A stretch of 64,000 bases of DNA from Histomonas meleagridis 2922-C6/04-290x (lineage: Eukaryota > Protista > Parabasalia). Below, piece after piece: positions 14,705 to 61,736 of this stretch (within the stretch, counting starts at the first letter, position 1; every line of letters starts with the position of its first letter). A program made the translations under genes and the position numbers. Below the pieces are notes generated by a model, which worked only from the letters and a program-made list of their open reading frames with translations, was not told where the DNA came from and ran no database searches. The stretch is taken from positions 1-64,000 of the forward strand of contig JAANOX010000042.1 of NCBI GenBank assembly GCA_020184695.1, written 5' to 3'.

Positions 14705-17700
14705 ATGATTCTTTATATCTTCGCAATATGTATTGCAAAAGAATTTAAATTCTCTACGTCAAGAGGTAAAAAAATTGATTTTAGAATAAATCAATCTAAA
14801 GCAATTAGATCATCAAGAAGAACTTGGGCTTATGTTTATTTTTGGCAACTTCCAAATGTGAATAAACTACGAGAACATAACATAACTCTAAATCCAAATC
14901 AAATGGTATACAAGAACATATACAAACTTTTTTTAATTCCTTCACAAATATCATATCTCAAGAGAAATAATGTTTCCTTTAGACCTCTTCAACCCGAAGA
15001 TAAAATTATTGATTTGGACGAAATTAAGAACTCAACATATTTATATGTTCGTGGTATTTTTGAGCAAGATATTGAAACAACTTTATTTAAAGTCATTTCA
15101 AGGGCAAAAGATTTCATGATTATTGAAACAAATTATCCTGAAGAAACCACTAGATATCTTAGTCAGCTTGAAGAAGTAGAATTCATCTCTAAACATAAAG
15201 AACCAAAACTATTTAATAGTATCTCCTCAGGTTTCACGCAACAAAACAATTTTAATATTACAATTGATTCTTATGGTAATCCATCATTACCACGTTATTT
15301 AGAATCAAAAGGAATTACTGGTAAGAATCAACTTGTTGCATTTTCTGATTCACCCTTAGATTACCACCATACAATGTTCGAAGACCCAAATACAACACTT
15401 AAATTTAATGAGTCAATGTTAAATCATAGAAAAATATATTATTACTTTAACGAATTTTCGGACGAAAAAGAGTTATATAAAAATTTGGTAAATGAATTAC
15501 ATGGAACTCATGTTGCAGGAATAATTGCAGGTGCTGCATCCAATTTTACGAGTAAAATTAATTCATATAATGGAGTTGCACCAGAAGCTAAACTTATTTA
15601 CTTTGGGAATGAAAATACATTTGCCAACAATTTCTTTAATCCTAATACACTTTATCATAAAATGATTTTACCTTTATTTGAGAATAGTAATTTACATGTT
15701 TTCTCAAATTCATGGGGTAATAATGAAGATGGTAATTCACCATATGCTAATTATGGTTATGATTATTTACTTTACAATGATTTTCTTGGTGAGTTTCCTT
15801 TGTTTTTATTTGCAGCGGGTAATGAAGCTGATTCTATAATATCTTATTCAATATGCTATCCATCATCAGCAAAAAATGTTTTTTCAATTGCAGCTGCTGA
15901 TACGCTTTTCTATTTCGAGATATTTGTTACTGATGGAATAAAAGAAATTCCTATTTATTTAAATGTATTATTTGCATCATTAGAAGAAGTAATTACTGAT
16001 AAAGAATTTTACCTTTCTAAAATTGATGATTTTACATTGGCTTCAGGAAGTAAAAAATATATTTTATTTGATTATGAAGTTCTGGTTTTATTTTATAATG
16101 ATAATAAAAAATTTCTAGAACTTCTAAAATCACAAATTCAAAGTTACAATATTTATATGTATATATTTGATATTTCTGCTGAAATTGGAGAAATATTCAT
16201 TGATGATATAAAAATGCTTTTAGGAATAAATACATATATGACAACACTCCAAAATGGTGTTTTAAAAGAAATGACGGGTAAAATATTATCATATGAGAAT
16301 TTCTCTTCATATGTTATGAAGAGTAATTCAAGTATTTCAAGAGCAAGTTATTCTTCATTAGGTCCTTCATATGTTGGTATTATTAAACCCGATATTATGG
16401 CACCAGGATCTTTCATGTATAGCGCAAAATCTGACTCAACACCAACTCAAGATCATGGATCAGATGATTCTGATTATATGAATCATTTAATAAGTGAACA
16501 AGGAACATCAATGGCAACACCAAATGCTGCTGGAGCAGCTGCTCTTATATCTCAATATCTATCAGATGGATATTACTTAAATGAAACAGTTAATGTAAAT
16601 CCGTTGCTTTTGAAATCGATTTTAATTGCATCAGCATCAAGAGCAGATGGAAGTTCAACACCTGATTGCGATACTGGACATGGGCTAATTGATATATCAA
16701 AAGTTTTGCCATTTAATGACACAGATTTTGGTTTAAGATTTACAAAATTATCAAGAATGAGAAAAGGAGAAACACATCATATAGGAGTACTTGAAGTGAA
16801 TAATAATAATGTTCCACTTAAAATTGTATTATGTTCACATGATACTCCACTTGAACCAGATTCATTAATTCCTATATTTTTTGATTTAGATTTAATTGTT
16901 GTTTCTCCTTCGAAAAAAATATATATTGGAAATAATAGGACACAAGATACTGAACATTTAACATTAAATGAAAAAGTTATTATTCCAATTTCAGAAATTG
17001 AAGAAGGAGAATATGAAATTCATGTAATTTTAAATAAATTAAATGAAGAAGAAGTACTTGTGCCATATGTTGTTTGTGCTGTTGGGCCATTTACACAAAA
17101 TGATACTGAATTAAATCCAATTTATATTGAAATGAATGCTACAACAAATTGCTTACCTTTAGAAAATGGAATTTGTGAAAATGGAAGGATGAAATGCAAT
17201 GAAGGATATTCAGGTCAACTTTGTAGAATTCAATTTAATGAATTTCCAAATTATAAATCTGGCTTAATTAATGTAATTCCACCAAATACATTTGTTTATT
17301 TCAAAATTTCACCTCAAGCACAATATGATAAATTACTTATTACAACAATTTGTTTAAATCAAAGTAATACAAGATCCGTAATTTGGGAACTAGGTTCGCC
17401 AGATAATTATATCCCAGTTTTAGCCGAAAATGGGAATTTAATTAATTCTTTCGGAAATAATGGATTTGATGATTTCTTAGAAGTTGATTCAAAACAGGAA
17501 CATTATTTCATGATTTCAAATAATTTTAGAGATGCAACACAATTTATTACTTGTGCATTAAATGCTCCTCATAATGGACCTTTATGTTTCTGTGAAAATA
17601 ATCAATGTACAAAATCAAAGTGTGAATATCAAAATACGTATTCAGATTTAAACTCATTATTTGGACTTTGGAGTTATGTAAACAACAGAACAATTTATAT

Positions 17701-18466
17701 TGATCATTCATATTCAATCAATCCATTATTTATGGTTTATTTCAATATTACATTAAAACTGCTGAATAAAGAAGGACCAAAACATGTAATTACAATATCA
17801 GAACCATCTAAAATTAATGGAATTAAATTAACTGCAAAAGATTTAATTCTTCAGTTAGGAGATATCAAAGAAAGTACACAAACATTTGTTATGTTCGATT
17901 ATTTGAATGTCAAAAATGTAAGTTTTATATCAAATAATCATTATTTATCAGTTCAACATCTTATTACTGATTTTGATTCATATTCAGAATCATTAATAAA
18001 GCCATATGAAGTTAATATTAGTGATACATATAATCCAATTCCTAAGATTAAAATATATAACGATTCGATTAAACTCTTTACAAAAACAAATGAAATGAAG
18101 AAATTTAACTTTGTTAAAGGAATGAATTTTACATTAATAACAAATCGTACTTCTAAATATAATATTAAAATTATTAATGGCGAAAAAGAATCTATTAAAA
18201 TTATGGATAATGTTTCAATTACAATAGTTTTCACTAACACAAATAATTGTAAAATAGAAATTGATGAATCACTTAACAACATGGTTAAAATAATTTCTCT
18301 ATATCTAGAAAAGAGCCTATTATCAAAAGGTGCGATTATTGGAATATCAATTTCTGCTGGGATTGTTGCTATAGTTCTTGTTATTATCATGATAATCGTA
18401 TGCAAAAGAAAGAAAAATTCAAATAACAGTGTAATAGGAGAGCCTTTAAGCCTTCAAAATCTCTAA
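14705..18466 (+). CDS. Membrane-anchored subtilisin-like serine peptidase (S8) with Cys-rich EGF-like segments
   Basis: Signal peptide; triad D (AFSDSPLD), H (LHGTHVAGIIAG), S (GTSMATP); oxyanion FAAGN; Cys-rich modules; C-terminal TM followed by KRKK. Confidence 0.95.
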   Translation: MILYIFAICIAKEFKFSTSRGKKIDFRINQSKAIRSSRRTWAYVYFWQLPNVNKLREHNITLNPNQMVYKNIYKLFLIPSQISYLKRNNVSFRPLQPEDKIIDLDEIKNSTYLYVRGIFEQDIETTLFKVISRAKDFMIIETNYPEETTRYLSQLEEVEFISKHKEPKLFNSISSGFTQQNNFNITIDSYGNPSLPRYLESKGITGKNQLVAFSDSPLDYHHTMFEDPNTTLKFNESMLNHRKIYYYFNEFSDEKELYKNLVNELHGTHVAGIIAGAASNFTSKINSYNGVAPEAKLIYFGNENTFANNFFNPNTLYHKMILPLFENSNLHVFSNSWGNNEDGNSPYANYGYDYLLYNDFLGEFPLFLFAAGNEADSIISYSICYPSSAKNVFSIAAADTLFYFEIFVTDGIKEIPIYLNVLFASLEEVITDKEFYLSKIDDFTLASGSKKYILFDYEVLVLFYNDNKKFLELLKSQIQSYNIYMYIFDISAEIGEIFIDDIKMLLGINTYMTTLQNGVLKEMTGKILSYENFSSYVMKSNSSISRASYSSLGPSYVGIIKPDIMAPGSFMYSAKSDSTPTQDHGSDDSDYMNHLISEQGTSMATPNAAGAAALISQYLSDGYYLNETVNVNPLLLKSILIASASRADGSSTPDCDTGHGLIDISKVLPFNDTDFGLRFTKLSRMRKGETHHIGVLEVNNNNVPLKIVLCSHDTPLEPDSLIPIFFDLDLIVVSPSKKIYIGNNRTQDTEHLTLNEKVIIPISEIEEGEYEIHVILNKLNEEEVLVPYVVCAVGPFTQNDTELNPIYIEMNATTNCLPLENGICENGRMKCNEGYSGQLCRIQFNEFPNYKSGLINVIPPNTFVYFKISPQAQYDKLLITTICLNQSNTRSVIWELGSPDNYIPVLAENGNLINSFGNNGFDDFLEVDSKQEHYFMISNNFRDATQFITCALNAPHNGPLCFCENNQCTKSKCEYQNTYSDLNSLFGLWSYVNNRTIYIDHSYSINPLFMVYFNITLKLLNKEGPKHVITISEPSKINGIKLTAKDLILQLGDIKESTQTFVMFDYLNVKNVSFISNNHYLSVQHLITDFDSYSESLIKPYEVNISDTYNPIPKIKIYNDSIKLFTKTNEMKKFNFVKGMNFTLITNRTSKYNIKIINGEKESIKIMDNVSITIVFTNTNNCKIEIDESLNNMVKIISLYLEKSLLSKGAIIGISISAGIVAIVLVIIMIIVCKRKKNSNNSVIGEPLSLQNL

Positions 18467-18828
18467 ATATCTTGAATAAATATGATATCAAGATTAATCT
18501 TTTATTTTAAAAAACAAATTGTAATTAATTTTTATAATAATGAATGACTATGTTCTATAACATGAATTTGAACGCAAATGAGTTGGGAACAATGAGTGAA
18601 ATTAAAATTGAGTCAACCCTGAAATAGAGTACATTAATCAAGGTAAAATTATCACAATATTTCAAGAATTCATATAAATTTTATCTACAAAATTGGAAAG
18701 GAAACACCAATTTACATAAAGATGGAATATCTAAATTTTTTTCCAAACACAATAATTCACAATTGATTTTTAATTGAAATTTAATGTTTTACTAAAATCC
18801 GTATTAATACATTAATGATTTTGACATA

Positions 18829-20337
18829 TCAATGGCTACTAAAGTATTCCTTTGACTTGTCACCAATTTGTGTATACATCATTAATGTATCCACGTTATA
18901 CAACAACAAGTCAAGATCGAGTAAATCAATCTTAGACTCCAAATAATTTGTTAACAATTCCTCATCGAACAGATTTGGATCTATTTCCAAATCACTCAAC
19001 TCAACCAACACAGCACTCACAAAGAATATCAACATGTTATAAGGATTCGGTGATAACAAAATCGCGGCGATCATTTTTTGTGCCTCATCAAATGTTCGCC
19101 GCATAATGAAAAGTTCCGAAATCGATTTTCTCATGAATTGGAAGTTCGTGATGCATCCTGAAAACTTTTCCATGAAATTCTTCAATTGCGGGAAATGATT
19201 CATTATTTTTTCTTCGATAATAAAGAAAAGATAATAATATAAAGGAAATGAATATCTTTCATTAGTTGCATCCATGTACATACATCGAAAGTTATAAAAT
19301 GACCAAAATATCATCGCTTCTGCTTCATCAGTATTAATTTTATTACCACGAAAATCTAAAATTGTCTTTTTATCAAGTGGTCCGCAAATATAACTTTTAG
19401 TAAAGATTAAGATCAGATTCAAATAATTATCGTTTGGCGCCCATTTTAGATAAAATCTACAGACTATGTGTTAGTGTTTAAATATTAGGGGAAAAATATT
19501 ATCATTTTCCCCCATGTTAAACATACAAGACATAAAAACATTAAAAATGATACGTTTAATCGTATCGGAGTTTATGTGAAAAGTGTCAAGTTTCGATTCA
19601 AGATATTTTGTGAATTTACGAAGAGAATCATCATTGATCCATTGATCTTCAGTAAGGATATTCCATTGCTCTTTAACACGGAGATAACTTGTGGTTAATT
19701 CTTTAGGTTCTCCATATTTTAAAAATAAGGAATTATATAAAATATAAGAATATGACTTAGACGAAAAATCTAGAGAAGAAAATAAAATTCCTTGCTGAAG
19801 CCTAGTAGTTTCTTGATCAATATAATTGAATAAATCTTTGTCTGTAACTGGTTCCTTTTTTGGAATTAAAAATGATATTGAAGATTTATGATCAAAAACT
19901 GATGGATGACAGTGATCAAAATCGAACGAAATTTTTTGCTTCATGACTTGTTGTAATTTCTTTTGATTTGGTGGAATTAGAGAGATATCTCTAATTGTCT
20001 TTTTTTCTTTTGGTCGTTCTACCATTGATATTGTACATTTTGAGGTACCTGGTATTGCATCAATTTTTGCATGTTTCTGAATAAAAGTCATTACAATTGA
20101 TAAAGATAATCTATTGTAGAAACGAATTATTCTGATATCTGATCCCTCAAGCTTTAAAAGTAATTCGCTTTCACTATATTCCATTTGTTTAAATGAAAAC
20201 AATGGATTTGATAAAAAAACGTTTGAATTATCATCAACAAATTCAATAAATGGTTTACCATTGATCTCTTTTATAGACATTGATACCTTGATTATATTTC
20301 CTGGATCAATTTCTAGTTGAACAGGATCAATATCCAT
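18829..20337 (-). CDS. TBC (Rab-GAP)-like protein, two exons (20337-19527 and 19463-18829), 481 aa
   Basis: The two track ORFs are in frame and are joined by a canonical parabasalid intron. The spliced junction reads NVFMS-F-CRFYLKW. TBC-like segments: YLRVKEQW, IFWSF, HFPQL, LIFFVSAVL. Confidence 0.8.
19464..19526 (-). other. 63-nt spliceosomal intron (parabasalid long type)
   Basis: Begins GTATGT and ends ACTAACACATAG (fused branch point and 3' splice site). Its removal deletes the only in-frame stop. Confidence 0.92.
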
Positions 20338-20426
20338 AAAAATGTTGTCTTTTGTAAAGTACTCAATATAAACACCCGTTTACTTTCTAAAGCGAACGTT
20401 AAAATCTTTGGTCGGTGGAACTGTAA

Positions 20427-21542
20427 ATGGAATGCGAAATCTGTCTTCAACAAGTACACACAAGAGTTATTCTACCTTGTGGCCACTCTAACTTTTGTTT
20501 AAAATGCTATGTTAGACTTGTAAAATGTTATAACTCACATATCTGCTACTTTTGCCAAAGAGAAATAAATTCAGAACCAATTGCAACAACTAATATGAAA
20601 ATTAGTTACGACCAGGCCAAATGGAAAGTGACAAAGCATGACAATGAGTTAAATTTAGGATATTTTGAACCACAAATCCAAAATCAAATTAATTCGTTTT
20701 TATGTTTTTCATGTATCAAATGTGATCAAAAATTTTCTAATGTACAAAATCTCGAACAACATGTTAAGCAACATCAATATTCTGTTTGTCAAATTTGTGC
20801 CGCATCAAAACGTTTTCTCCCTTGTGAAACACCTGTTTTTCCAAACAATCAATTTCTTGAGCACATAAGCCATCATCAAAAATGTCCATGTTGTAAATTC
20901 ACAGCATTTGATTCCAAAGATCTTGAAATGCATATGCTTGATAATCATTTTCGATGTGATATTTGTATCAAGCGTAACAAAGTTATTTGGTGTAACACAG
21001 CACAAGACTTAGTACGACATATTGAAAACACGCATTTCGTCTGTCATTATCCCGAATGTTCATCTGATAATTTCATTGCATTTGCAACATATGATGAACT
21101 TCGAAGACATCTTTATGAAGTACATGGCGAACGTACCACAAAAGAGCGCCCTCCGAAAGTTGTTCTTCAAGAAGATGATGAAGATCATCGCGATCAAATC
21201 ATTAGTTTAAACAATCGCTTCATGAACAAACTTCGGATTGTATTTGATGACGAATCGATAATTGACAAGCTAAAGACACAAGCAACATTACTTATACAAA
21301 ACAAAATATCTGTTCGACAATTTTATGAACAATTCTCGGAAATTGCGGGCGATAAGAAAAACGCAATTTTCACTGATATGGTCGCAATATTACCCGACCC
21401 AAAGAAAAGAGGCGAATTGTTGAGGATGCATGAGAACATGTGTACAGTGCCAAAGAATTGTATACCAAAAAGTGAATCATTACCAAATGTGGGACATAAA
21501 CAAAAGAGAAGACAGAAGAAAATGGTAATATCTTTTTGCTGA
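20427..21542 (+). CDS. RING plus C2H2 zinc-finger E3 ligase, ZNF598/Hel2-like
   Basis: N-terminal C3HC4 RING (CEIC...PCGHSNFCLKC), several C2H2 fingers (FRCDIC, HFVCHYPEC) and a C-terminal helical domain. Confidence 0.8.
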   Translation: MECEICLQQVHTRVILPCGHSNFCLKCYVRLVKCYNSHICYFCQREINSEPIATTNMKISYDQAKWKVTKHDNELNLGYFEPQIQNQINSFLCFSCIKCDQKFSNVQNLEQHVKQHQYSVCQICAASKRFLPCETPVFPNNQFLEHISHHQKCPCCKFTAFDSKDLEMHMLDNHFRCDICIKRNKVIWCNTAQDLVRHIENTHFVCHYPECSSDNFIAFATYDELRRHLYEVHGERTTKERPPKVVLQEDDEDHRDQIISLNNRFMNKLRIVFDDESIIDKLKTQATLLIQNKISVRQFYEQFSEIAGDKKNAIFTDMVAILPDPKKRGELLRMHENMCTVPKNCIPKSESLPNVGHKQKRRQKKMVISFC

Positions 21543-26164: not shown

Positions 26165-26261
26165 TAAAATTTGCCAAATTCAACCTAAAATCCAGCGGTT
26201 TTACAACCGGAAATGCATATTTTTATTTTTATAAAAAATTTTATATTTATAACTTTCGAAT

Positions 26262-26333
26262 GGGTGTGTAGCTCAGTGGTAGAGCGTATCTTTCGCATAG
26301 ATAAGGCCAGGGGTCCGATTCCCTTTACATCCA
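26262..26333 (+). tRNA. tRNA-Ala(CGC)
   Basis: 72-nt cloverleaf with G3:U70, anticodon arm TATCT-TTCGCAT-AGATA and a downstream T-run. The T-loop has C55. Confidence 0.9.
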
Positions 26334-26389
26334 AATTTTTTCTTTTTTGCATATTTTTTAACGGTCTACAAAATCCGTTTTTAATCCAA

Positions 26390-27657: not shown

Positions 27658-30600
27658 ATGCAAAAAATCCAAGAGTTCTATGATACAAGTTCACCAACTC
27701 AAGAAATGCTTGAAGAAACTTGGGATATTGTTGGGTCGTTGGATGTGAACTCTATTACACCAGAAGCTTTTTCTAAGATCACAATATTTTGGTCTGAAGT
27801 TGTTGGTTTACTTCAATTCCCATCAAAAAAGTTCTACACAGTAAAAGTTATGTCATCTATTATTCGCGCTTCTCAAATTGCCATAATGTTATGTAAAAAA
27901 TCACATGAACTTGGACAAAAGACAACAAAACCAATTGAGTCACTTCTTGAAATAAGCTGTGATGATATGTTTCAAGAGAGTGAACATGTAGATTTTCCTT
28001 TATCTGAAATTAATGATATTAACTCTTCCATTCAGTTTATTCAAATTGTACAGAAAAAGCTTGAATGTGGTATACCATCCATATCCGATGTCATATTATT
28101 ATCTTTATATTTTTCTATTAAATTTAATAATTTTACTGAAGATCCAGAAATAATCCAAATTATCAATGAAAAAACATCTATTGAATGCCCTGAAAAAGCG
28201 CCGACATTTACAGGAGATTTCAGTGTATTTAAAACCAAGATTAATCCATTTCATTATTTATTTGTTCGCTCACTTTTTGAGGAAATAACTGGTCAGTCGG
28301 TTATTCCTCTAATTGAAAACGATGAACTTATTGATAAAATGATTACTTCCGAATATAATCCTCAATATCCATATGTTTTTATCTATTACAAATCTTCTCC
28401 CGTTAATGTTTTTGAGCATGTTTTAGAGAATTCAATTGATTATCGAGTTGTCATTTTATTATCATTATCACATTTAATCGAATATGCTGATCCATATTTA
28501 ACCACAAATTGTATTTCCACCGAAATTAATCCAACACTAGCTTTAACTTATGTATTTTCACAAGATCGTGTTGCAAAATGTGCTCAAAACTTTTTAGATA
28601 ATTTAATGGAAAATGAGTTACCAAAAGATTGGAAAGATGAAATTTCATTTATAACGAATACAATTAAGTTACCCAAATCGATGAAGACATTGTTATTCCA
28701 ATTATCTGTTGGTGATGAATCATCGATTATTGAATTACTTAATTTTCCACAATGTATTGAATACATTGATCCAAAGAAGTCGGAAAAGATTAATATTCTT
28801 TATCATATCTTAAGCAAAGATATCATTGATTTTGATATAACGAAAGTTAATGTTATTAATGCAATTGAAATGTGGAAAATGATACAACAAAACAAAGAAA
28901 TTAATTATGAAAAAGTTTTGGAAGTTTTAGAAGAAGATTTAAATAATCGAACAAATGAAGAACTTAAAAATGATAAAATTAAAATTGCTGCAATTAAATT
29001 CGGTTGTTTCCAACATAATAAATTAACAACAAATTATTATGATAATATACCAAAAGTATTTTTAACAAATTTCATTTCTAAATTTTTGGTAATTAATTTA
29101 AACTTAATAATTATATTACATTATCCTAAAATCGAATTAAATGAAAAAATTAAAAACATTTTACAAAATTTCGTTTCACATTTTTATATTTCAGAAGAAA
29201 ACAAAAAATTAATTAATGAAAAATTCCAAATTAAATTTGATATTAATTTAGCATTTAAATCATTTAATGAAATTTATTTAAATATTACAAAAGAAATAGA
29301 ATTAACAAAGTTATTAACATCATTTATACCATTATTCAAATATAATGAATTTGTAATCTCATGTATTAAATCATTTGTTACTAAAAAAGATGAAAAAGCA
29401 TTTGATATATTATTTAGTAGTAATTTACCTATTAATATAATTGCAGAAATGGAAAAATCATTAACGAAAGATGAATTATTTGAAATCTTTTTAAGATATA
29501 CATCAACAGTTACATCACTTACATATATAAATCATTTATTAACTAATAAAGATAATGAGAATTTAATATATAGTAAAATTGGTGATTATTGTATAGAAAG
29601 GCCTAAAGAAATGATGTTATTAATCGCAAAGTTATCACCAAATAATGAACAAATTCAAACAATCATTAAATCAATTATTAAATTTAAAGAATTTGTATCA
29701 AATGATTTAATTGAATTATTATTATATTTAACTAATAATCATAAGAATATTAAATATGAACATTGTAAATGTAAACATAAAAATACAATTTCATATGAAT
29801 GGAAAGAAGATCTTAATGAAAAGAATCAAAACGAAGATGATGTTATTAATAAAGAATTCACAGGTACAATTAATCCTTATGAAGAAGAAGAACAAGTTAA
29901 AGAATGTACATATGTTAAAACAGGAGAGAAATTTATCATTCAGCCATGGTTCCGTTGTTATACATGTGGATTAAAAGGTAATACAGGATGTTGTTTAGCA
30001 TGTGCACAATTATGTCATAAAGATCATCAATTAGTATTTGCAGAAAATAGTTCATTTTTCTGTGATTGTTTTAATTCTCCATATTGTAAATTAAATAAAA
30101 ATAATAAAAATATAAATCAAAAAAGTAATGAACCAGAAAAATCTAAATTAGAAATAACTAATGAAGAAACTTTACAATTATTTTATAAAACAATTGAATC
30201 AAATATTAATAATGATAACAAAAATGTTAAAGAAGATTTAATGAAACGATTTAATCAATATTTTTCGACATTAAAAACATGTGATACAATTAGTTCACAA
30301 TTTATGTTTGAAAAAATCAAAAAAGAAAAAGAATTTCCGAATCAAAATAATTTGTTTTCTTCATTATCAACTGTATTTGAAGGAGATTTATCATTATTAG
30401 TTCGAAGATGTACAATTTCACCTATTATATTAACATGTGTAACTAATAATTATTTAATATTTTCTGATGGTACTAATTTATATAGTTATTCATTACTTAA
30501 TTTTGATTTAATTAATACATATAAATTAACTTCTCCAATATTACAATTACAAACTTCACCAAATAATAATAAGAAATTTGCTGCTTGTTCACCGAAAACT

Positions 30601-32280
30601 TTAATAATATTTGAAGTTAATGATGAAGGAATTTTAAACAAATTAAAAGATTATGAAATGGAAAAATTAATTAATTTTTCATGGATACCTAATGAAGAAC
30701 GAATTGTGTTGTTTAATGATAATGATTTTATAATAGTAAATTTAAATGATGATAATATTATTAAAATTAATATTCAAAATAAACATATTACATCATTTAT
30801 AATAGTAAAATATTTAGAGAATTATTATTGTCTTTATGCTACAGATTCATCTAAATATGGATATTTCTCATTAAATAATATTCCAACACAAATTGATGTT
30901 AATTATCGATTTATTAATGTAAGTTTCTCAGTAACATATTTAAGTTATTGTAAAGAATCCGATATAATATTTATATCAACACGTGATGATCGATTTATTA
31001 CAATGATTAAGACTAAAGACTTATTTGAAAATAATATTAATCGAACAATACGAATTAAAACATTTGAAACGCCACAAAATTTAATGTTTTTGTTTTTACA
31101 TCCTAAAGATCCATTTATATATATATTTCAACATGTATCATCATGTGGTTTAATTGCAATAAAATTTTCCACTAAAACATTTAAATATAATAAAATATCA
31201 AATAACTTTTCACATTCAGCATTACCTTTATTAGAATGCGACATGACTGAATTAACAAGTTTTGTAACAACAAATGATTTATATTATATCACTAATAATG
31301 GCGAATTACAATTATTAAATTATAATAATAAAACACAAAATGAATCAACGAATATCAACAACAATAAAATTATTAATTTCGAACCAACAAAATTTAAAGT
31401 ACCATTAAACTTTTGGATGAATTGTAATCGTACAAGTAATCATATAACTATTACGACATTTAATAATAATAATATTTCTAATTTATTAGATTTTAATAGT
31501 TATATATTTAGTAATATAAATAATAATAATAATATACCAAAGTTAATGCGTATTCAATCATCTTCATCAAATTCGGTGATTTTAGGATTTGTAATATTTC
31601 CATCGAATAAGAAAAGTTCGACACAAATATATTATAAAATATTTAATCGTTATTATAAAGGTTCAAGATATCCAATCTCAATACCATTAAAACCAAATGA
31701 AATTGGACTTAATAAATTATATACAATCGAATTCGTTAACACAAATAATAATATAAATTCGAATATTATTATTGATGGAATTCATATATATACTATGAAC
31801 ATTAATGAAATTAGTCCTAAAATTTATTTAAATAAAAATGATGAAGATGAAGATGAAACTTTCGATTGGTTTAATAATGGTAATAATATATTCGATTTCA
31901 TTGATAATGATGAAGAGAATTTCGATGATAAAAAACAAAATTTGTTATATAACTTAAGTCGTAATTTAATGAAAAATGAATTAACAAAAGAAGAAAATAT
32001 TAAAATTATTAAATATATTTATCAATATCCAAAATATGCAAAATATTGTCGAACAATTATATTAAAATCATTAAATGATAATAATAAAAATAAGATAATA
32101 AATGATTGGTGCGATGCTTTAATAGAAGTAGTGAAAGAGAAAAAAGTAAATGATTGGAACACATTGTGGAGAGATGTTATGGTGCTGCCTGATGATAAAA
32201 GAAAAATTGTAACAGAAAATATTCGAAAATTACAGCCGGTGATAGAAGGAGAATTTGCTATTGTAAATGCTTTCCTTTGA
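27658..32280 (+). CDS. UBR-box zinc-finger protein resembling the N-terminal/central part of UBR4/BIG
   Basis: CTYVKTG..FIIQPWFRCYTCGL....GCCLACAQLCHKDH...FFCDC, followed by beta-propeller-like and DOC-like beta regions. Confidence 0.85.
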   Translation: MQKIQEFYDTSSPTQEMLEETWDIVGSLDVNSITPEAFSKITIFWSEVVGLLQFPSKKFYTVKVMSSIIRASQIAIMLCKKSHELGQKTTKPIESLLEISCDDMFQESEHVDFPLSEINDINSSIQFIQIVQKKLECGIPSISDVILLSLYFSIKFNNFTEDPEIIQIINEKTSIECPEKAPTFTGDFSVFKTKINPFHYLFVRSLFEEITGQSVIPLIENDELIDKMITSEYNPQYPYVFIYYKSSPVNVFEHVLENSIDYRVVILLSLSHLIEYADPYLTTNCISTEINPTLALTYVFSQDRVAKCAQNFLDNLMENELPKDWKDEISFITNTIKLPKSMKTLLFQLSVGDESSIIELLNFPQCIEYIDPKKSEKINILYHILSKDIIDFDITKVNVINAIEMWKMIQQNKEINYEKVLEVLEEDLNNRTNEELKNDKIKIAAIKFGCFQHNKLTTNYYDNIPKVFLTNFISKFLVINLNLIIILHYPKIELNEKIKNILQNFVSHFYISEENKKLINEKFQIKFDINLAFKSFNEIYLNITKEIELTKLLTSFIPLFKYNEFVISCIKSFVTKKDEKAFDILFSSNLPINIIAEMEKSLTKDELFEIFLRYTSTVTSLTYINHLLTNKDNENLIYSKIGDYCIERPKEMMLLIAKLSPNNEQIQTIIKSIIKFKEFVSNDLIELLLYLTNNHKNIKYEHCKCKHKNTISYEWKEDLNEKNQNEDDVINKEFTGTINPYEEEEQVKECTYVKTGEKFIIQPWFRCYTCGLKGNTGCCLACAQLCHKDHQLVFAENSSFFCDCFNSPYCKLNKNNKNINQKSNEPEKSKLEITNEETLQLFYKTIESNINNDNKNVKEDLMKRFNQYFSTLKTCDTISSQFMFEKIKKEKEFPNQNNLFSSLSTVFEGDLSLLVRRCTISPIILTCVTNNYLIFSDGTNLYSYSLLNFDLINTYKLTSPILQLQTSPNNNKKFAACSPKTLIIFEVNDEGILNKLKDYEMEKLINFSWIPNEERIVLFNDNDFIIVNLNDDNIIKINIQNKHITSFIIVKYLENYYCLYATDSSKYGYFSLNNIPTQIDVNYRFINVSFSVTYLSYCKESDIIFISTRDDRFITMIKTKDLFENNINRTIRIKTFETPQNLMFLFLHPKDPFIYIFQHVSSCGLIAIKFSTKTFKYNKISNNFSHSALPLLECDMTELTSFVTTNDLYYITNNGELQLLNYNNKTQNESTNINNNKIINFEPTKFKVPLNFWMNCNRTSNHITITTFNNNNISNLLDFNSYIFSNINNNNNIPKLMRIQSSSSNSVILGFVIFPSNKKSSTQIYYKIFNRYYKGSRYPISIPLKPNEIGLNKLYTIEFVNTNNNINSNIIIDGIHIYTMNINEISPKIYLNKNDEDEDETFDWFNNGNNIFDFIDNDEENFDDKKQNLLYNLSRNLMKNELTKEENIKIIKYIYQYPKYAKYCRTIILKSLNDNNKNKIINDWCDALIEVVKEKKVNDWNTLWRDVMVLPDDKRKIVTENIRKLQPVIEGEFAIVNAFL

Positions 32281-33964: not shown

Positions 33965-36221
33965 ATGCAAAGTTATCAACACATAACTTTAACACCTCAG
34001 GAATTGGAAGAAATAGAAACAGCGAATGGTTTATTTTATAATGGAAATTAAACAGAAGTATATTTTAAAACTTCAGGTGATATTCACAATTTCGTCTATG
34101 ACCTCTGTAGAAATAGAGGTTTTATTCCATGCGCAAAAGACAAAAAAACGAATCAATTTGTTAGATATCGTTGTGAGTATTCTGGCGATCCAACACCAGA
34201 TGCAAAATCTTCTAAGAAAACTGGATGCCCATTTTATTTGAATACTTCTCTAAACAAAAATGGTTATCACATAACTTCATTTGATGCCAGACACAACCAT
34301 CCATTAGAACCTGGAAAAACTTCTTTAATTATTAGTCCAGAAATTGAAAGAGAAATACAAATGCTTAGTAATATTAACATAAAACCAAGGCAAATTGCTG
34401 ATATTATGGAACTTAGAGGACTAAAAATACCTTCAAATATTATAGCTGGTATAATTTATAAAGAAAGATTTTCATCCATTGATGATGAATATGAAAGCCT
34501 TTGTAAATATATGGTTGATAATAATGGAATATGTGGTCCATTTGATTATATTCATCCTGAACAAAAAATGCCTTTAAAATGTGCAATTTGGACTCAGACT
34601 GAAGATGAAAAATTAAACTTATTAAAGTTTGGAGATATAATTTTCTTTGATAGTACAGACCCTAAATTATAAAATGGATGGATTGTAATACCTGTAAGTG
34701 TAATTGATTATAATAGACACATTCTTTCAGATGGCCTTTGCTTCTTAGCATTTGAAACTGAAGAAACGATTTCATTTCTTCTATTTCAGATTTTTACTCC
34801 CGATATTGCAGAAAAAAACGATGTAATAATTACTGATGAAGATCAATCTTATAGAAGTCCAATAGCAGAAATGAATCATTCTCCATATCATGTTTTTTGC
34901 GCAATTCATAAAAGAAAAAATTTTGATCGACATCTCAAAGAAAGCGAAGTTAACAAGTTCGAAAAAGTTGAAGCAAAGAATTTGTTTTCTAAAATTTGTT
35001 ATTCAACTAACAAAAGAGAAGTTGACAATTGCTTTTCATCATTGTTTCAATTAAAAGATGCGCAATTGGTAAATTATATAAGAAAAATTCCAAATGATAA
35101 AAATTATTTTTGTAAAGCGTTCATACAAAAATGCACACTTGGCTACAATACTTCTTCAGTTGCTGAATCTATAAATCGAATAATTAAGTCTGATACAGAA
35201 AAAAATAATGTTTTTGGCGGAATTTCGTAAGAATTACAATCATTCTATGCAAAGATCATATAGAAATGCTCAAATTTCTGATTCAAAATTATTATGTCCA
35301 ATTACTTTTCCTTTCCCAGATATTTTCCAAAATGCTTCCAAGATATGTGTTATTGAAATATTTACAAATATTTTAAAATCAAAAAATTACATTATTGCTG
35401 GTAATAATAAAAATAATTATTTTGTTGTCCATAAAGAACAAGAAGAAATGAAAAATGTTGTGGAAATTAATGAATCACATATTAATTGTACATGTGGTCA
35501 TAACATTGTGTATGGATACCCATGTCCACACATTCTTTGTGTTATATTTACATTAAAATTGAATATTCCGCATACAAATTTAATTCATCCACATTGGATA
35601 ACTTCTGGGACATTACCTTTAATGACTATTGATCCTGAATCACTTTCGAAGTTAAGTAATTTTGATATAAAAATAGAACAACAAATAATTGAAAAAAATC
35701 AAAATGAAATTGATATTAGTCTTGAGAATCAAAGTAGATATTGCAATATTGTATATCTTGGTAAGCAACTTGCCAGAATTGGCTCGCTTGCTTCTGATTC
35801 TGACTATAATGACATTGTTTTTCAGATGTCAAGACTTCTATCCATAAAATCATTACCAGTAAATGCATCGAATGAACCTGAAATGGCGGTTCCACGAAAG
35901 AAAGGAAGAAAAAAGAAAAGTCAAAACGAACCAGAAGTTATAAGTGAAGATACGCCATCATGCAGAATATGTAAAAGTGAAGAACACAGAGCAGAAAACT
36001 GTTCGATATATAATTATTACATTTGGAGAAAAAACAATCCTTCCGGTCCAAAAAATAAAAATAAATGTAAAGTTTGTGGCTCACGGGGTCATAATTCACA
36101 AACATGTGACGTAAGAAGAGGAGGAGTATTAGGGATAAATGATGAAGTAATTTATTCTTTATATGGAGATATTCTTCCAAATAATATTGATAACCTAATA
36201 CTAGAAAAAAGTAATGAATAA
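33965..36221 (+). pseudogene. MULE transposase pseudogene (FAR1-like DNA-binding domain, DDE, SWIM, two CCHC knuckles)
   Basis: RYRCEYSG..KKTGCPF..HNHPL; FFDST, ITDED, CAIH, TSSVAESIN; CTCG..GYPCPH; CRIC..HRAENC and CKVC..GHNSQTC. In-frame TAA at 34049 and 34670, and a frameshift near 35200. Confidence 0.92.
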
Positions 36222-47914: not shown

Positions 47915-50900
47915 ATGAGGAACCAAATTCGTGAAGATCTTCCTTTTTCGGATGTAACCTATAATATTAAACTCAAAGATTTATCCTTAGAAAATTCTGA
48001 ATTAAAAGCAAAAATAGAGGACTTGGAATCAAGATTATTAATTATCAAAGAAAATCAAAAAAATGAAAGAATAAAGCATAAAAACGAAATTGAAAACCTA
48101 ACAGAGAATAATCGCATTTCACAAGAAGAAATGATTAAAAAAATTAATGAACTACAGACAAAACTTGATCAAAATTTTAACAATGTAAAAGATGATCAAC
48201 AACTAAATTTTCAAGTAAATGCATTTTTAGATTTTCTTTCTTCAAAAGAAGATCAAAATATTATGAATTTAAATCAAGCCATGAAATTGTATTCAAACCT
48301 TTTTTCTTCTATTAAAGATCACTCAGAAAAAAACAAAACTTATGAAAAACAAAACTCACTATTGTCAGCACAACTCAAAAAATTGGAAGAAAAACTTGAA
48401 AACTCAAATAATAAAATCCATTCACTTCAGAAAAAAATACGATACTTTAAACAAAATGCTTCAAATGCGGATAAAAACATAACAGAACTCACAAAAAATT
48501 TACAAAATAAGAGTAAAAATGAAGTTAGTGAACTTGAAAACACAATAAATGAACAAAACATCAAGATCCAAGAACTGACAATCGAGTTAAAGAAAGCAAG
48601 AGAACAAACAAACGAGCAAAATAAGAGTTACATTCAGGAAACATACGAATCAAAATTAACAATCCAAAATAACAAAATTGAAATATTGAATAAATCAATT
48701 GAAGAAAAAGAACAACAAATTCAAGAATTGCAAAATAAATTACAACAAACTGAAGAAAATAATCAAATATTATCTAATCTAAATAAAGAAAAAGAAAAAT
48801 TAATGATTGATCAAGAAAAGATAATCGAAATATCAAAGAATAAAATAAAAGATTATAAAATAAAGGAATCACAGCTTAAAAATGAATACAATGAACTCAA
48901 CACAAAAATTATCGAATATGAAACAAATATTCATGAATTAAAATATCAAATATCTGAACTAAAAACTAGCAAAGATCAAAAAAAAGATATTAAAGATGAA
49001 GGAAAAATTATTCAAACATCAGATAAATATAAAGAAGAAAACGAAATGTTGAAAGAATCAATTACATCTTTGGAAAAACTTATTGAATCACAAACGAATG
49101 AAATTTCAGAATTATATAAACAAAGATATGGAATTGTTCAACAACTTAATAATGTTGATTCATTTTTATTACAAAATGATTCATCTATTCAAAAGGTTCT
49201 CAAAAAATATAATTTGTTACTTAAAGACAATAAAAATTTAAAGAAAAAAATAATTCAAACTAAAGTCAGAACTAAAAACTTAATAAATTCATCCATCAAT
49301 CAAATTCTTGATCTCATTCCACAAGAACTTTCTAATGAAGTTAACAATCTGAAAAATCAATCAATTGATAAAGTAATAAATAATTTAACAAAAACTCTTC
49401 TACAACATTTCGAAGAATTAGAATCGAATAAAAACATCCAAAATGAAAATAAAGAATTAAATTATTTTAAGAAGAGATATAACGCAATACTTATGCAACT
49501 TGATGGAGCATATCGGTGCCTTAAATCTATTGCATATGGAAGGGATCAAGATTTAGATTCAAATCTTAGATCAGAATTATTGAAGTCTTGTGCAAGAATT
49601 GGATCTTTTATTGATGTTCAAAAAGAAGAATTTCCTTTACCTGAATTCAGAAAATCAATTTTTAATACTTTTGATATTAGAGATCCAGAAAATATTTCAC
49701 AAATTCTTCTTGACTTTATTCCAGAAGATGATATCTATAAAACTCCATATCATGAGTTAATTACTTTAATTTTATGTATGGTCCAAGTTAATATATTATT
49801 AAATAATAGAATTCTTTCAAATGAACAAAAATTATTTGAGTTTTCAAAAATTAGTCAACTTGAAGAAGATCATATGAATCAAATTCGTGAATTAGAGAAT
49901 TGGAAATTAGAACAAATAACAAATAATCAAAGACTTTCAAAAGTTATTTCTAAAATTTTGAATGAACAAACAAATGACTTCAAAATTCTTTCGGATCGTT
50001 TCATCGATATTTTTAGTGATGAACCAATTAGTATTATCAAAGAATCTGAAAAGAATATAATGATTGAAAATATTGATGATTTAGAAAATCAAGTTAAAAT
50101 GTTACAAAAAAGGTTAATGAAGAAAGAAAATGAAAAAAAGAAAACAGAAAAAGAAATTAGTAATAAAGATATTATCGAAAAAACCATTAAACAAAATCAA
50201 GAAATAAATGAATATAAGATCAAATTTGAAGAATCACAAAATCAATTAACTGAAATGGAATCCAAAATCTTGCATCAAAAGGAAACAAGTCAATCAACAA
50301 TTAATGATTTAACTTCTCAAAATTCTTTATTACAAGAAGAAAATCACAAACTTCATGAATACCTTAAAGAAAAAGAATCATCAATTATGGAATTAAATAA
50401 TAATAAAGAATCGCTTCAAGAAAGAATCAAAGAAATTAATCAAAAAATGCAAAAAGTTATTTCGCAGAAAAATAATTATAAACAAAAGTACAATGAAATT
50501 AGTCAAAATAACTCAATAACTTTAGCTGATTTAAAGGAAAGAAGTATTGACTTAAATTCAAAATATGAAGAGAGAATTAATGAACTTGAAACAGAATTAG
50601 AAACTGTTAAAGAATCCTTAACAAAAGCAAATGAAAACATTAATAAATTTAATAAAATTAAAAATGATCTTCAATTACAAAATGCAAAATTACAATTATC
50701 TGAAAGAACAGCATTGTTAAAAGTTAAGTCTCTTACTGATGCTTTAACTCGTGAAAAAGAAGAATCAAAAGCAAAACAATTATCTATTATGATAGATATG
50801 AAGAATCAAAATAATAAAGTTATTAATAATCTAAATGATACTATAGAAGATTGTAAAATGCTTTTGATTAAAGTTCTTAATGAAGAATTCAACTATAAAA

Positions 50901-51514
50901 TTGATGAAAACAAAGAAATAGACTTAAATAACTTGCTTTCAATTATTTATTCACAACTTAAAGAAAGAAAAGAACAACAAAATATTTCAAAAGATGTAAT
51001 AATACTTAAGAAAAGATTATGTCTTAGCCCAACAAAATCTTTAATATCTGCTTATGATACAATTTCTCAAAAACTTAATGATCAAAATGAATTTATTTCA
51101 AAGTTAAATGAACAAATTAAAACTAATCAATCAAAAATATCACAATTAGAAAAAGAAAATAAAACCTTACAACGTTATAAAAAGGAATTATCAGATTGGA
51201 ATAATTGGAGTAATTCAATGTTACATCAGATATCTGATACATCATTTCTTTTATTACCTTCAGCAGATACACGTTTCTTACTTGAAGAATCAATCTTATC
51301 TTCAATTTCACATAGATCACTTGTTAGAAAAATGAATATTTTAAGAGCAGAGAAGAAGCTTTATAAATCATCTAAACTTCAATTACTTTCACCTAAACGT
51401 GAAAAAGTCAGATCAGTACGTCCTTTAATTCTTGCTTTTATTTTTTCAAGCAGATTAATGAAAACTAGTGGGAAAATACCAATAAATTACTCATCACCAC
51501 AAAATATCACTTAA
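47915..51514 (+). CDS. Large coiled-coil protein (1199 aa)
   Basis: Long heptad-rich E/K/N/Q/L tracts, a central helical insert and a basic/hydrophobic C-terminal motif. Confidence 0.85.
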   Translation: MRNQIREDLPFSDVTYNIKLKDLSLENSELKAKIEDLESRLLIIKENQKNERIKHKNEIENLTENNRISQEEMIKKINELQTKLDQNFNNVKDDQQLNFQVNAFLDFLSSKEDQNIMNLNQAMKLYSNLFSSIKDHSEKNKTYEKQNSLLSAQLKKLEEKLENSNNKIHSLQKKIRYFKQNASNADKNITELTKNLQNKSKNEVSELENTINEQNIKIQELTIELKKAREQTNEQNKSYIQETYESKLTIQNNKIEILNKSIEEKEQQIQELQNKLQQTEENNQILSNLNKEKEKLMIDQEKIIEISKNKIKDYKIKESQLKNEYNELNTKIIEYETNIHELKYQISELKTSKDQKKDIKDEGKIIQTSDKYKEENEMLKESITSLEKLIESQTNEISELYKQRYGIVQQLNNVDSFLLQNDSSIQKVLKKYNLLLKDNKNLKKKIIQTKVRTKNLINSSINQILDLIPQELSNEVNNLKNQSIDKVINNLTKTLLQHFEELESNKNIQNENKELNYFKKRYNAILMQLDGAYRCLKSIAYGRDQDLDSNLRSELLKSCARIGSFIDVQKEEFPLPEFRKSIFNTFDIRDPENISQILLDFIPEDDIYKTPYHELITLILCMVQVNILLNNRILSNEQKLFEFSKISQLEEDHMNQIRELENWKLEQITNNQRLSKVISKILNEQTNDFKILSDRFIDIFSDEPISIIKESEKNIMIENIDDLENQVKMLQKRLMKKENEKKKTEKEISNKDIIEKTIKQNQEINEYKIKFEESQNQLTEMESKILHQKETSQSTINDLTSQNSLLQEENHKLHEYLKEKESSIMELNNNKESLQERIKEINQKMQKVISQKNNYKQKYNEISQNNSITLADLKERSIDLNSKYEERINELETELETVKESLTKANENINKFNKIKNDLQLQNAKLQLSERTALLKVKSLTDALTREKEESKAKQLSIMIDMKNQNNKVINNLNDTIEDCKMLLIKVLNEEFNYKIDENKEIDLNNLLSIIYSQLKERKEQQNISKDVIILKKRLCLSPTKSLISAYDTISQKLNDQNEFISKLNEQIKTNQSKISQLEKENKTLQRYKKELSDWNNWSNSMLHQISDTSFLLLPSADTRFLLEESILSSISHRSLVRKMNILRAEKKLYKSSKLQLLSPKREKVRSVRPLILAFIFSSRLMKTSGKIPINYSSPQNIT

Positions 51515-51566
51515 ATTTACATCAACGATCGTTTTTCAGTCAAAAAGTGGAATGAATGATTTACTT

Positions 51567-52301
51567 TCACATATAAGTGAAGTTGAATTTTCCAAAATCA
51601 TTACCAGTCGTCATCCAAATCTGGCCAACGCCAGCATCACCTAACATCATAGAGAAATTCTTATCGTCTTCAATGTTTGCTAAATAAACATATCCTTCAC
51701 CAACATCATATTGGCCTTCTTGGAAGTAAGGATATCCAAGGAGATGTGATTTTGCAGCATATCTGTTACGAACATCTTTAACAAATTCTTCCATTTCAAG
51801 ATCATCTAATCCACTTTCACGAAGTTTTTCATAATATTCCTCACTTGTTGCATCGAAATCAACGAACTCTTCCCATCTTTCAATGAGGGTTGGCTCAATT
51901 TTTGCATTAGCAATTGGTTCCTTAACAATAAGTTTATCAAATTGATCAGGAGTAAATATTAAAACTTCAATTGTATCTTCTTCATTAGATGACATGCATT
52001 CTGTACAATATAAAAACTCTACTAAAGCATTTTGATAGTTTTCAGGGAAAAATGCTTTGACTGGAGCTGGTGCATTTGAAAGATTCAAAGACAAAAGAAC
52101 TTCTTTAACTTGATGGCACTCAGAGCATTGAGGAACTTCTTTTTCTGGGAGATAAAAAATAGAACCTCCAAATTTTGAATCTAAAGGAGATGTAGAATTT
52201 TGCTTTTTGCAAACAGGATAATAACCTATTTTTGTGAAATTGTTCCTTTCGAAGAAATTCCACATCTCCTGTTCTTTGTTGTTTTGCAAAGTTGGTTTCA
52301 T
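51567..52301 (-). CDS. YwqG/DUF1963-like protein
   Basis: SKFGGSIFY, HLLGYPYFQEG, MMLGDAGVGQIW. Initiator TCACTT lies upstream. Confidence 0.75.
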   Translation of the reverse strand: MKPTLQNNKEQEMWNFFERNNFTKIGYYPVCKKQNSTSPLDSKFGGSIFYLPEKEVPQCSECHQVKEVLLSLNLSNAPAPVKAFFPENYQNALVEFLYCTECMSSNEEDTIEVLIFTPDQFDKLIVKEPIANAKIEPTLIERWEEFVDFDATSEEYYEKLRESGLDDLEMEEFVKDVRNRYAAKSHLLGYPYFQEGQYDVGEGYVYLANIEDDKNFSMMLGDAGVGQIWMTTGNDFGKFNFTYM

Positions 52302-61664: not shown

Positions 61665-61736
61665 GGGTGTGTAGCTCAGTGGTAGAGCGCTACATTTGCA
61701 TTGTAGAGGCCTGGGGTTCGATCCCCCACACATCCA
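61665..61736 (+). tRNA. tRNA-Ala(TGC)
   Basis: 72-nt cloverleaf with G3:U70, CTACA-TTTGCAT-TGTAG, a GTTCGA T-loop and a T-run terminator. Confidence 0.97.

Follow-up and report, generated by a model that had tools for sequence, protein, structure and literature searches.

A predicted Type A spliceosomal intron at a conserved position joins two open reading frames into one TBC-like gene of Histomonas meleagridis

The locus described here lies on the minus strand of a 64,000-nucleotide stretch of the genome of the parabasalid Histomonas meleagridis 2922-C6/04-290x (assembly GCA_020184695.1, contig JAANOX010000042.1, positions 1 to 64,000), which we refer to throughout as the window. An upstream open reading frame (ORF) of 288 codons (20337..19471) and an open frame continuing downstream to 18829 share one common frame, and the sole stop that separates them is a TAA within the motif ACTAAC. 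Read directly from the minus strand, the segment 19526..19464 that ends in this motif region consists of GTATGT, 45 nt and ACTAACACATAG, 63 nt in total, in exact agreement with the original prediction for this DNA, which had quoted the sequence and length of a spliceosomal intron hidden between the two ORFs. Excision at 19527^19463 (the caret marks the exon junction here and below) leaves a stop-free ORF of 481 codons. The intron falls in phase 1, with a predicted junction of TCT T^TC TGT; across window positions 19527/19463 the spliced minus strand would read ATGTCTT followed by TCTGTAGA, and the junction obtained from this frame analysis is the same TCTT^TCTGT that had been predicted earlier.

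The gene model that we propose for H. meleagridis joins coding sequence (CDS) 20337..19527 to 19463..18829 on the minus strand and would encode a protein of 481 amino acids. Exon 1 (19527..20337, minus, 811 nt) opens with an ATG at 20337..20335 and contributes 270 codons and the first base of a split codon, which would specify an N-terminal PH-like module (approximately residues 5-90) and the start of a TBC-like helical domain (from approximately residue 193). Exon 2 (18829..19463, minus, 635 nt) completes the split codon with its last two bases and adds 210 further codons and a stop at 18831..18829, and with them the remainder of the helical domain. Between the two lies the candidate intron (19464..19526, minus, 63 nt), with its 5' splice site GTATGT (intron nt 1-6) at 19521..19526 and a fused branch-point/3' splice-site 12-mer, ACTAACACATAG, at 19464..19475; the in-frame TAA occupies 19473..19471, and the predicted branch A, at 19471, is 7 nt from the 3' end of the intron.

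These signals have a close precedent in Trichomonas vaginalis, whose Type A intron motif was reportedly the subject of Vanacova 2005. Type A introns have been taken up again since (PMC6260720, PMC12316389, PMC13548475); their validated T. vaginalis consensus is GTAYGT{42,104}ACTAACACAYAG (PMC13548475), with the branch A placed 7 nt from the 3' splice site (PMC6260720), while an older definition of the spacer between the two motifs gives 41-178 nt. The Histomonas segment fits the validated consensus exactly, in line with the earlier description of it as a parabasalid-type GTATGT donor with a fused branch-point/acceptor: the donor conforms to GTAYGT, the 12-mer conforms to ACTAACACAYAG and places its branch A at the expected distance, the spacer (63 - 6 - 12 = 45 nt) lies inside the range of 42-104 nt, and removal of the segment restores a 481-residue frame that has no internal stop and aligns with homologues without a gap.

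Chance is a poor explanation for this arrangement. Calculated analytically on a first-order Markov model of the window, the expected number of exact copies of the 12-mer ACTAACACAYAG is 0.0075 per window with both strands counted, and that of GTATGT combined with the 12-mer is 0.00036. The window contains a single copy of the 12-mer, also when one mismatch is tolerated, and a relaxed scan of the window for CTAAC-N4-AG returned no second site with a donor. Just two places in the window have a pair of open frames, each of 150 codons or more, split by a single stop, and the motif pair coincides with one of them. We considered a second hidden intron at the other place, around 34670, and rejected it; there are no splice signals around that stop (34670-34672), and the frame that it breaks (34052-36221, plus strand) is one of a FAR1/MULE/SWIM-zinc-finger transposase-like gene. 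The transposase label is based on weak Pfam matches to FAR1 and MULE, with SWIM in the next ORF, and the element is probably a decaying Mutator-like element.

Comparison with homologues treats the two pieces as parts of one protein. An exhaustive phmmer search with the downstream piece recovered 14 relatives, several of which are proteins of 451-478 residues in which the match to the piece is confined to the C-terminal 185 residues or so. In BLASTP comparisons with a full-length relative, P0011, residues 6-270 of the upstream piece match residues 15-277 (E = 9e-23), and residues 16-202 of the downstream piece match residues 294-478 (E = 9e-31); P0014 and P0024 show the same collinear pattern, and when the matches of both pieces are extrapolated exactly one junction codon is left between them. 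When aligned with nine homologues using MAFFT, the spliced protein crosses the junction without a gap, while a retained intron would appear as a 21-residue insert that is present in none of the nine. Five of the full-length homologues that span the junction in this way are uninterrupted. The original prediction had named orthologues encoded as two separate genes as an outcome that would count against it, but P0014 and P0024 are encoded by uninterrupted full-length ORFs on gut metagenome contigs, and therefore relatives do encode the whole protein as a single gene.

The position of the intron is shared more widely than its length. Besides the window gene, introns at the same codon, all in phase 1 and in the context S/T^C-M, are carried by one paralogue in the same genome and by three metagenomic relatives, with lengths of 55-111 nt, and each of these four has the donor GTATGT in the codon context S^C-M. 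The paralogue is P0011 itself (GPJ56_000051; WSYJ01000030.1), and the intron found at its locus (L006, 3833-3943, 111 nt, GTATGT...CCTAACCCACAG) is its annotated intron; the annotated gene span exceeds the CDS by the same 111 nt. A close relative of the paralogue has an intron of 102 nt (L012, 1020-1121, GTATGT...GCTAACACGCAG); an organism of 54% GC has one of 55 nt (L007, 258-312, GTATGT...GCTAACTCACAG); and a third relative has one of 75 nt that ends in a 12-mer identical to that of the window (L011, 184-258, GTATGT...ACTAACACATAG). In one further family member, represented by the loci L013 (1-268) and L014 (1-97), the corresponding phase-1 site has the acceptor ACTAACCCACAG, and no GTAYGT-like donor was present in the 256 nt of AT-rich upstream contig sequence available; the intron could possibly be much longer, the donor could have diverged, or it could be encoded elsewhere. 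On the contig of P0018, an ORF of 277 codons is followed 99 nt later by one of 201. Introns at the same codon in these homologues indicate that the intron position is ancestral in the parabasalid gene family, kept by the Histomonas paralogue and at least three other organisms and lost in several relatives.

Fusion of the two ORFs into one gene by an intron, as originally claimed, is thus supported by collinearity, by restoration of the frame and by the shared intron position. Our best explanation as a whole, in which we have high confidence, is that the segment is a true spliceosomal intron, of U2 type and of the trichomonad Type A class, situated in an unannotated H. meleagridis gene with the structure given above. 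The signals, the restored frame, the collinearity and the conserved position are properties of the DNA; from them we infer that the intron is actually spliced.

The protein had been called a TBC protein, and that label holds only at the level of fold. Neither piece has a match to RabGAP-TBC (PF00566) in Pfam at E values up to 1, five full-length homologues have no TBC match in Pfam either, and a phmmer search with each piece against the PDB returned nothing meaningful. When a profile of the family is compared with the PDB, TBC1D15 and TBC1D17 provide the top three matches, which are weak (E = 0.006-0.2; TBC1D15, E = 0.006) and are located around the Arg-finger region (motif B). For the paralogue P0011, AlphaFold was run on a family alignment of 18 rows in which the two window pieces were included, and the resulting model has a predicted local distance difference test score (pLDDT) of 84.6 and a predicted template modelling score (pTM) of 0.70. 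A Foldseek search with this model places TBC1D15 at the top for the helical domain (E = 2e-6, target-normalised template modelling score 0.66-0.67), followed by more than ten other TBC/RabGAP structures, including TBC1D24, TBC1D1, RABGAP1L, TBC1D20 and Gyp1p, and the N-terminal module of seven strands and a helix matches PH domains, such as those of SHARPIN, CARM1-N and TBC1D2. It counts against the assignment that this fold evidence belongs to the paralogue and not to the window protein itself.

The family lacks the Arg finger expected of a RabGAP. Opposite the IEKDVNRT of TBC1D15, the family has 'lEaaIeks' in the profile alignment, itself weak (E = 0.006), so that the Arg-finger motif IxxDxxR is not conserved; the Asp position is occupied by A, N or S and the Arg position by S, K, G or Q, and the window protein has LESKLDTF. 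For the Gln finger, YxQ, the family alignment contains no invariant Gln after the junction, and the alignment of the profile with the PDB stops just before the motif; the window protein has NYLN at roughly the expected place. The protein may be described as TBC-like, which is short of a demonstrated RabGAP, and is probably either a non-catalytic TBC-like protein or a very divergent GTPase-activating protein (GAP), and not a canonical dual-finger GAP. The earlier claim that the intron interrupts the protein mid-domain stands, since it lies between the degenerate motif B and the expected place of motif C, immediately beyond the helix that succeeds the degenerate Arg-finger motif.

The interior of the intron can fold, and the original prediction had proposed an 11-bp stem that would shorten the distance from donor to branch point. 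The 11-bp stem (intron nt 14-24 with 29-39, two G-U pairs, 4-nt loop) does exist, at -12.9 kcal/mol, but a register shifted by one base (nt 13-22 with 32-41, 9-nt loop) is favoured at -13.2 kcal/mol, with ensemble shares of 0.79 versus 0.21. In this register the 5' arm (UGGGGGAAAA) lies at 19505..19514 and the 3' arm (UUUUCCCCUA) at 19486..19495, both on the minus strand. The unconstrained minimum free energy (MFE) is -16.8 kcal/mol (z = -3.97 against shuffles), and this fold includes a further, outer helix of 7 bp (nt 4-10 with 46-52) in which the pair U6-A50 has a probability of 0.99. No more than 0.9% of real 63-nt stretches of window DNA reach a fold of this quality, which speaks for the hairpin. 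The outer helix is optional, appears in both the MFE and the centroid structure, and has its 5' arm at 19517..19523 (minus), overlapping the last 3 nt of the donor hexamer, and its 3' arm at 19475..19481 (minus), ending on the first A of ACTAAC.

We calculated effective lengths by folding each intron with its splice signals (5' splice site, branch point and 3' splice site) kept single-stranded, following the procedure of Hudson et al. 2019 (PMC6679479), who reported hairpin shortening of long introns in T. vaginalis, Giardia and Spironucleus; the idea is treated also in PMC12316389. Long T. vaginalis introns fold to distances between splice boundaries of 25-44 nt, with a median of 37 (PMC6679479). 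The constrained fold of the window intron has an energy of -13.2 kcal/mol (z = -2.9) and reduces its length from 63 nt to an effective 36 nt, so that it resembles the structured long introns in having more than 50 nt, a stable internal stem-loop and an effective distance within approximately 25-44 nt. Among the homologues, the paralogue intron shrinks from 111 to 23 nt (z = -3.3), that of its close relative from 102 to 34 nt (z = -4.2), that of L011 from 75 to 43 nt (z = -2.8), and that of the GC-rich L007 from 55 to 32 nt (z = -0.4); the range of raw lengths over the five homologous introns, 56 nt, comes down to 20 nt on folding. The shortening that was originally proposed is consistent with these figures, while the idea itself had already been published.

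The mechanism that we propose has the spliceosome recognising an extended 5' signal, GUAUGU, together with the fused ACUAACACAUAG, in which the branch A would lie 7 nt from the 3' splice site. Between these signals the intron would fold into a hairpin of 10-11 bp and so remove approximately 27 nt from the path, and the splice signals would end up approximately 36 nt apart, a spacing typical of structured long T. vaginalis introns. We infer a helping role for the hairpin from fold potential that exceeds background in four of the five homologous introns.

Several observations weigh against such a role. The outer helix would mask parts of the donor and of the branch motif, and could hinder splicing as easily as help it. 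The stems of the five introns cannot be aligned with one another, except for that of the paralogue (L006) with that of its close relative (L012), and the stem of the GC-rich L007 folds no better than shuffled sequence. Covariation of the stem in orthologous introns, to which the original prediction had looked, did not emerge as true compensatory change; RNAalifold gave no consensus structure for the one alignable pair, L006 and L012, because the MAFFT alignment does not respect stems. The two long, orthologous introns of this pair (L006:3833-3943 and L012:1020-1121) have the stem-forming blocks CGATAG/CTATC and AAAAGTG/CACTTTT in common and differ in their loops (ACGATC versus CCAAACTGA) and by a 13-nt insertion. 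Stems that are kept while loops vary are compatible with structural constraint, with no double compensatory changes.

It may be, then, that the hairpin is incidental: the intron would be real, the stem-loop would have no part in splicing and would have arisen by drift in AT-rich, unconstrained sequence, and the agreement with 25-44 nt would be a coincidence to which short introns are prone. This alternative is a serious one, which we rate as a substantial possibility although short of an even chance. Besides the lack of demonstrable compensatory covariation and the behaviour of L007, it can draw on the 0.9% of real 63-nt segments of the window that fold equally well, or about one in a hundred ordinary genomic 63-mers, and on effective lengths that still spread over 23-43 nt. 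It has to accommodate z scores of -2.8 to -4.2 in four of five homologous introns whose interiors are unrelated, the contraction of the length range after folding, and the same pattern in the long introns of T. vaginalis, Giardia and Spironucleus (PMC6679479). The reading in which the hairpin assists splicing is supported as a pattern, and is not new.

A different use for the intron had also been suggested, that its retention is regulated. As a segment divisible by three with an in-frame TAA, it would act as a switch between the full protein and a truncated product, comprising the PH-like module alone or half of the TBC-like domain, or a target of nonsense-mediated decay. The factual part of this suggestion is borne out, since the single in-frame stop is indeed the TAA of the branch-point motif, and retention would end translation at residue 288, mid-domain. 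A regulatory function finds no support, however. Wherever a phase-1 intron has the fused motif, its CTAAC puts a TAA in the frame of the downstream exon, and therefore in any such intron with a length divisible by three it is always an in-frame stop; all four of the homologous introns of such length have it, and the stop follows automatically from the geometry. Divisibility by three is itself not conserved, the L007 intron being 55 nt long. We consider regulated retention very unlikely.

The absence of this gene from the public record raises the question of whether it is a gene at all. We compared the public gene calls of assembly GCA_020186115.1 (contig WSYJ01000140.1), which is tabulated as H. 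meleagridis 2922-C6/04-10x (PMC13735942), and nothing is annotated there from approximately 15928 to approximately 20927 of the window, a stretch that takes in the candidate gene and part of a 1253-residue S8 peptidase ORF. That no gene is called at the locus speaks against our model, as do the failure to find either the spliced or the unspliced product in the protein collection (a word-indexed search with the 288-residue upstream ORF gave no self-match) and the modest identity of the window protein with its best homologue, only about 28-32%. Were the locus a pseudogene, disabled by a nonsense mutation and unspliced, the splice-like signals would be relics or chance, and a truly nonsense-broken ORF does exist elsewhere in the window, at 34670. 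Against this, both exons are otherwise free of stops over 481 codons; the stop sits in a flawless 12-mer that is paired with an equally flawless donor 63 nt upstream, for which the expectation was given above; homologous genes are interrupted by an intron at the very same codon; and annotation is lacking for the neighbours also, the S8 peptidase being uncalled and a ZNF598-like gene truncated, which looks like a gap in annotation. Decay of the gene is in our view very improbable.

We give almost no credence to the two ORFs being separate adjacent genes, in spite of homologous loci that prokaryote-style gene callers render as two ORFs (P0012, P0013, P0018 and P0026), since those split calls are themselves accounted for by introns at the same site, uninterrupted homologues of 451-478 residues cover both parts, the predicted TBC fold is unbroken over the junction, and there is no intergenic space, with the first Met of the downstream frame about 50 codons in. 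Read-through of the stop codon, with a 21-residue insert, was also considered and rejected; none of the nine homologues has such an insert.

The rest of the window has uninterrupted genes for RSP3, DENN, RhoGAP, saposin-like proteins, a kinase and a subtilase, and this content and a GC content of approximately 29% are consistent with an intron-poor flagellated parabasalid. The region of the gap in public calls (window 14705-21542; L001:1-5615) begins with the subtilase (Peptidase_S8) ORF of 1253 codons (14705-18466), which has no public model, and ends with the ZNF598-like RING/PAH gene, an ORF of 371 codons (20427-21542) of which the public call comprises the C-terminal 204 residues only; because of this truncation the intact ORF has no exact match on the public record. 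In metagenome/Logan contigs of 7.6 kb from a relative (L002-L005), a ZNF598-like gene is found within a few kb of a Peptidase_S8 gene of 1191 residues; the arrangement is unlike that of the window in having a WD40 gene in between, and this neighbourhood contains no homologue of the candidate gene. The comparison looks like partial microsynteny among parabasalids. Elsewhere in the window there are two tRNA-Ala genes with anticodons CGC (26261-26334) and TGC (61665-61736), both on the plus strand. A mechanically delimited RSP3 ORF of 413 codons has the first of them within its 5' extension, while the public RSP3 model (354 residues) begins just downstream, and the true start of RSP3 is probably after the tRNA gene. 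GC content falls to 0.216 in 28001-32000, across an ORF of 1540 codons (27658-32280), and AT skew rises to +0.234 in 48001-52000, across one of 1199 codons (47915-51514); both are probably low-complexity or repeat-rich coding sequence.

The immediate consequence of our reading is that a missing gene model can be added to the H. meleagridis genome. The genome paper gives a count of 573 predicted introns, with no analysis of splice motifs, and no motif-validated intron catalogue for this species is given in the papers that we found and read; a search guided by the splice motifs (GTAYGT...CTAAC-N4-AG) would pick up genuine introns that are missing from the published ab initio annotation or are mixed there with unsupported ones. 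More broadly, the pattern by which hairpins shorten long introns, and the Type A grammar, would both be extended to the Histomonas lineage. We would advance only tentatively, and think rather doubtful, the larger proposal that this is an ancient, position-conserved intron in a parabasalid-specific family of PH plus finger-less TBC proteins, in which stem-loops turn over in sequence while the distance between 5' splice site and branch point is held by selection at approximately 25-45 nt. If true, the family would lend itself naturally to comparative tests of how intron structure assists splicing by a reduced spliceosome, with a set made up of five delimited introns (55-111 nt), intronless relatives, and one relative (L013/L014) with a donor more than 256 nt away or elsewhere; the set might even catch a transition from cis- to trans-splicing like that proposed for Giardia. 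A homologous series at one position is a better substrate than unrelated introns for testing the structural hypothesis.

The features of this gene have analogues among known systems, each with its own departures. The predicted protein shares an all-helical TBC fold with TBC1D15 and TBC1D17 (PDB 5tub, 5tuc, 9si6), with the weak profile match around motif B, and resembles TBC1D2 in having a PH-like domain ahead of the TBC domain. It differs from solved TBC domains in an identity of approximately 10-12%, the lack of a PF00566 match, an Asp and Arg of IxxDxxR that are not conserved, and a downstream part in which we see no conserved Gln. The nearest comparison within the genome is the paralogue GPJ56_000051, which has the same domain layout, full-length collinearity, the same intron codon and phase, a GTATGT donor and a long internal hairpin. 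The paralogue, however, is annotated with a 111-nt intron that uses CCTAACCCACAG, while the window gene is unannotated and has an intron of 63 nt with the canonical 12-mer.

The structured long introns described in diplomonads and parabasalids by Hudson et al. 2019 (PMC6679479) provide the analogue for the hairpin, since they too exceed 50 nt and have a stem-loop between single-stranded signals, with effective lengths of 25-44 nt in T. vaginalis against 36 nt here. Theirs was a survey of unrelated introns within each genome, while ours concerns a single position, at which five homologous introns from different organisms have raw lengths of 55-111 nt; in both, the role of the stem in splicing is a putative one. 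With the Type A introns of T. vaginalis the window intron has in common the GTATGT donor, the fused 12-mer, the branch A at 7 nt, a spacer of 45 nt and its rarity in an intron-poor genome. It differs in that the host is H. meleagridis, that the intron is known here from sequence alone, and that CCTAACCCACAG, GCTAACTCACAG and GCTAACACGCAG also occur in the homologous introns of relatives, a looser motif than the consensus in T. vaginalis. Both the intron class and the structural principle are already known, and the current picture of metamonad splicing is unchanged by them; what is new is this instance of an intron, a gene model absent from the public annotation, the wider reach of the Type A grammar, which would now take in Histomonas, and the homologous series of introns at a single position.

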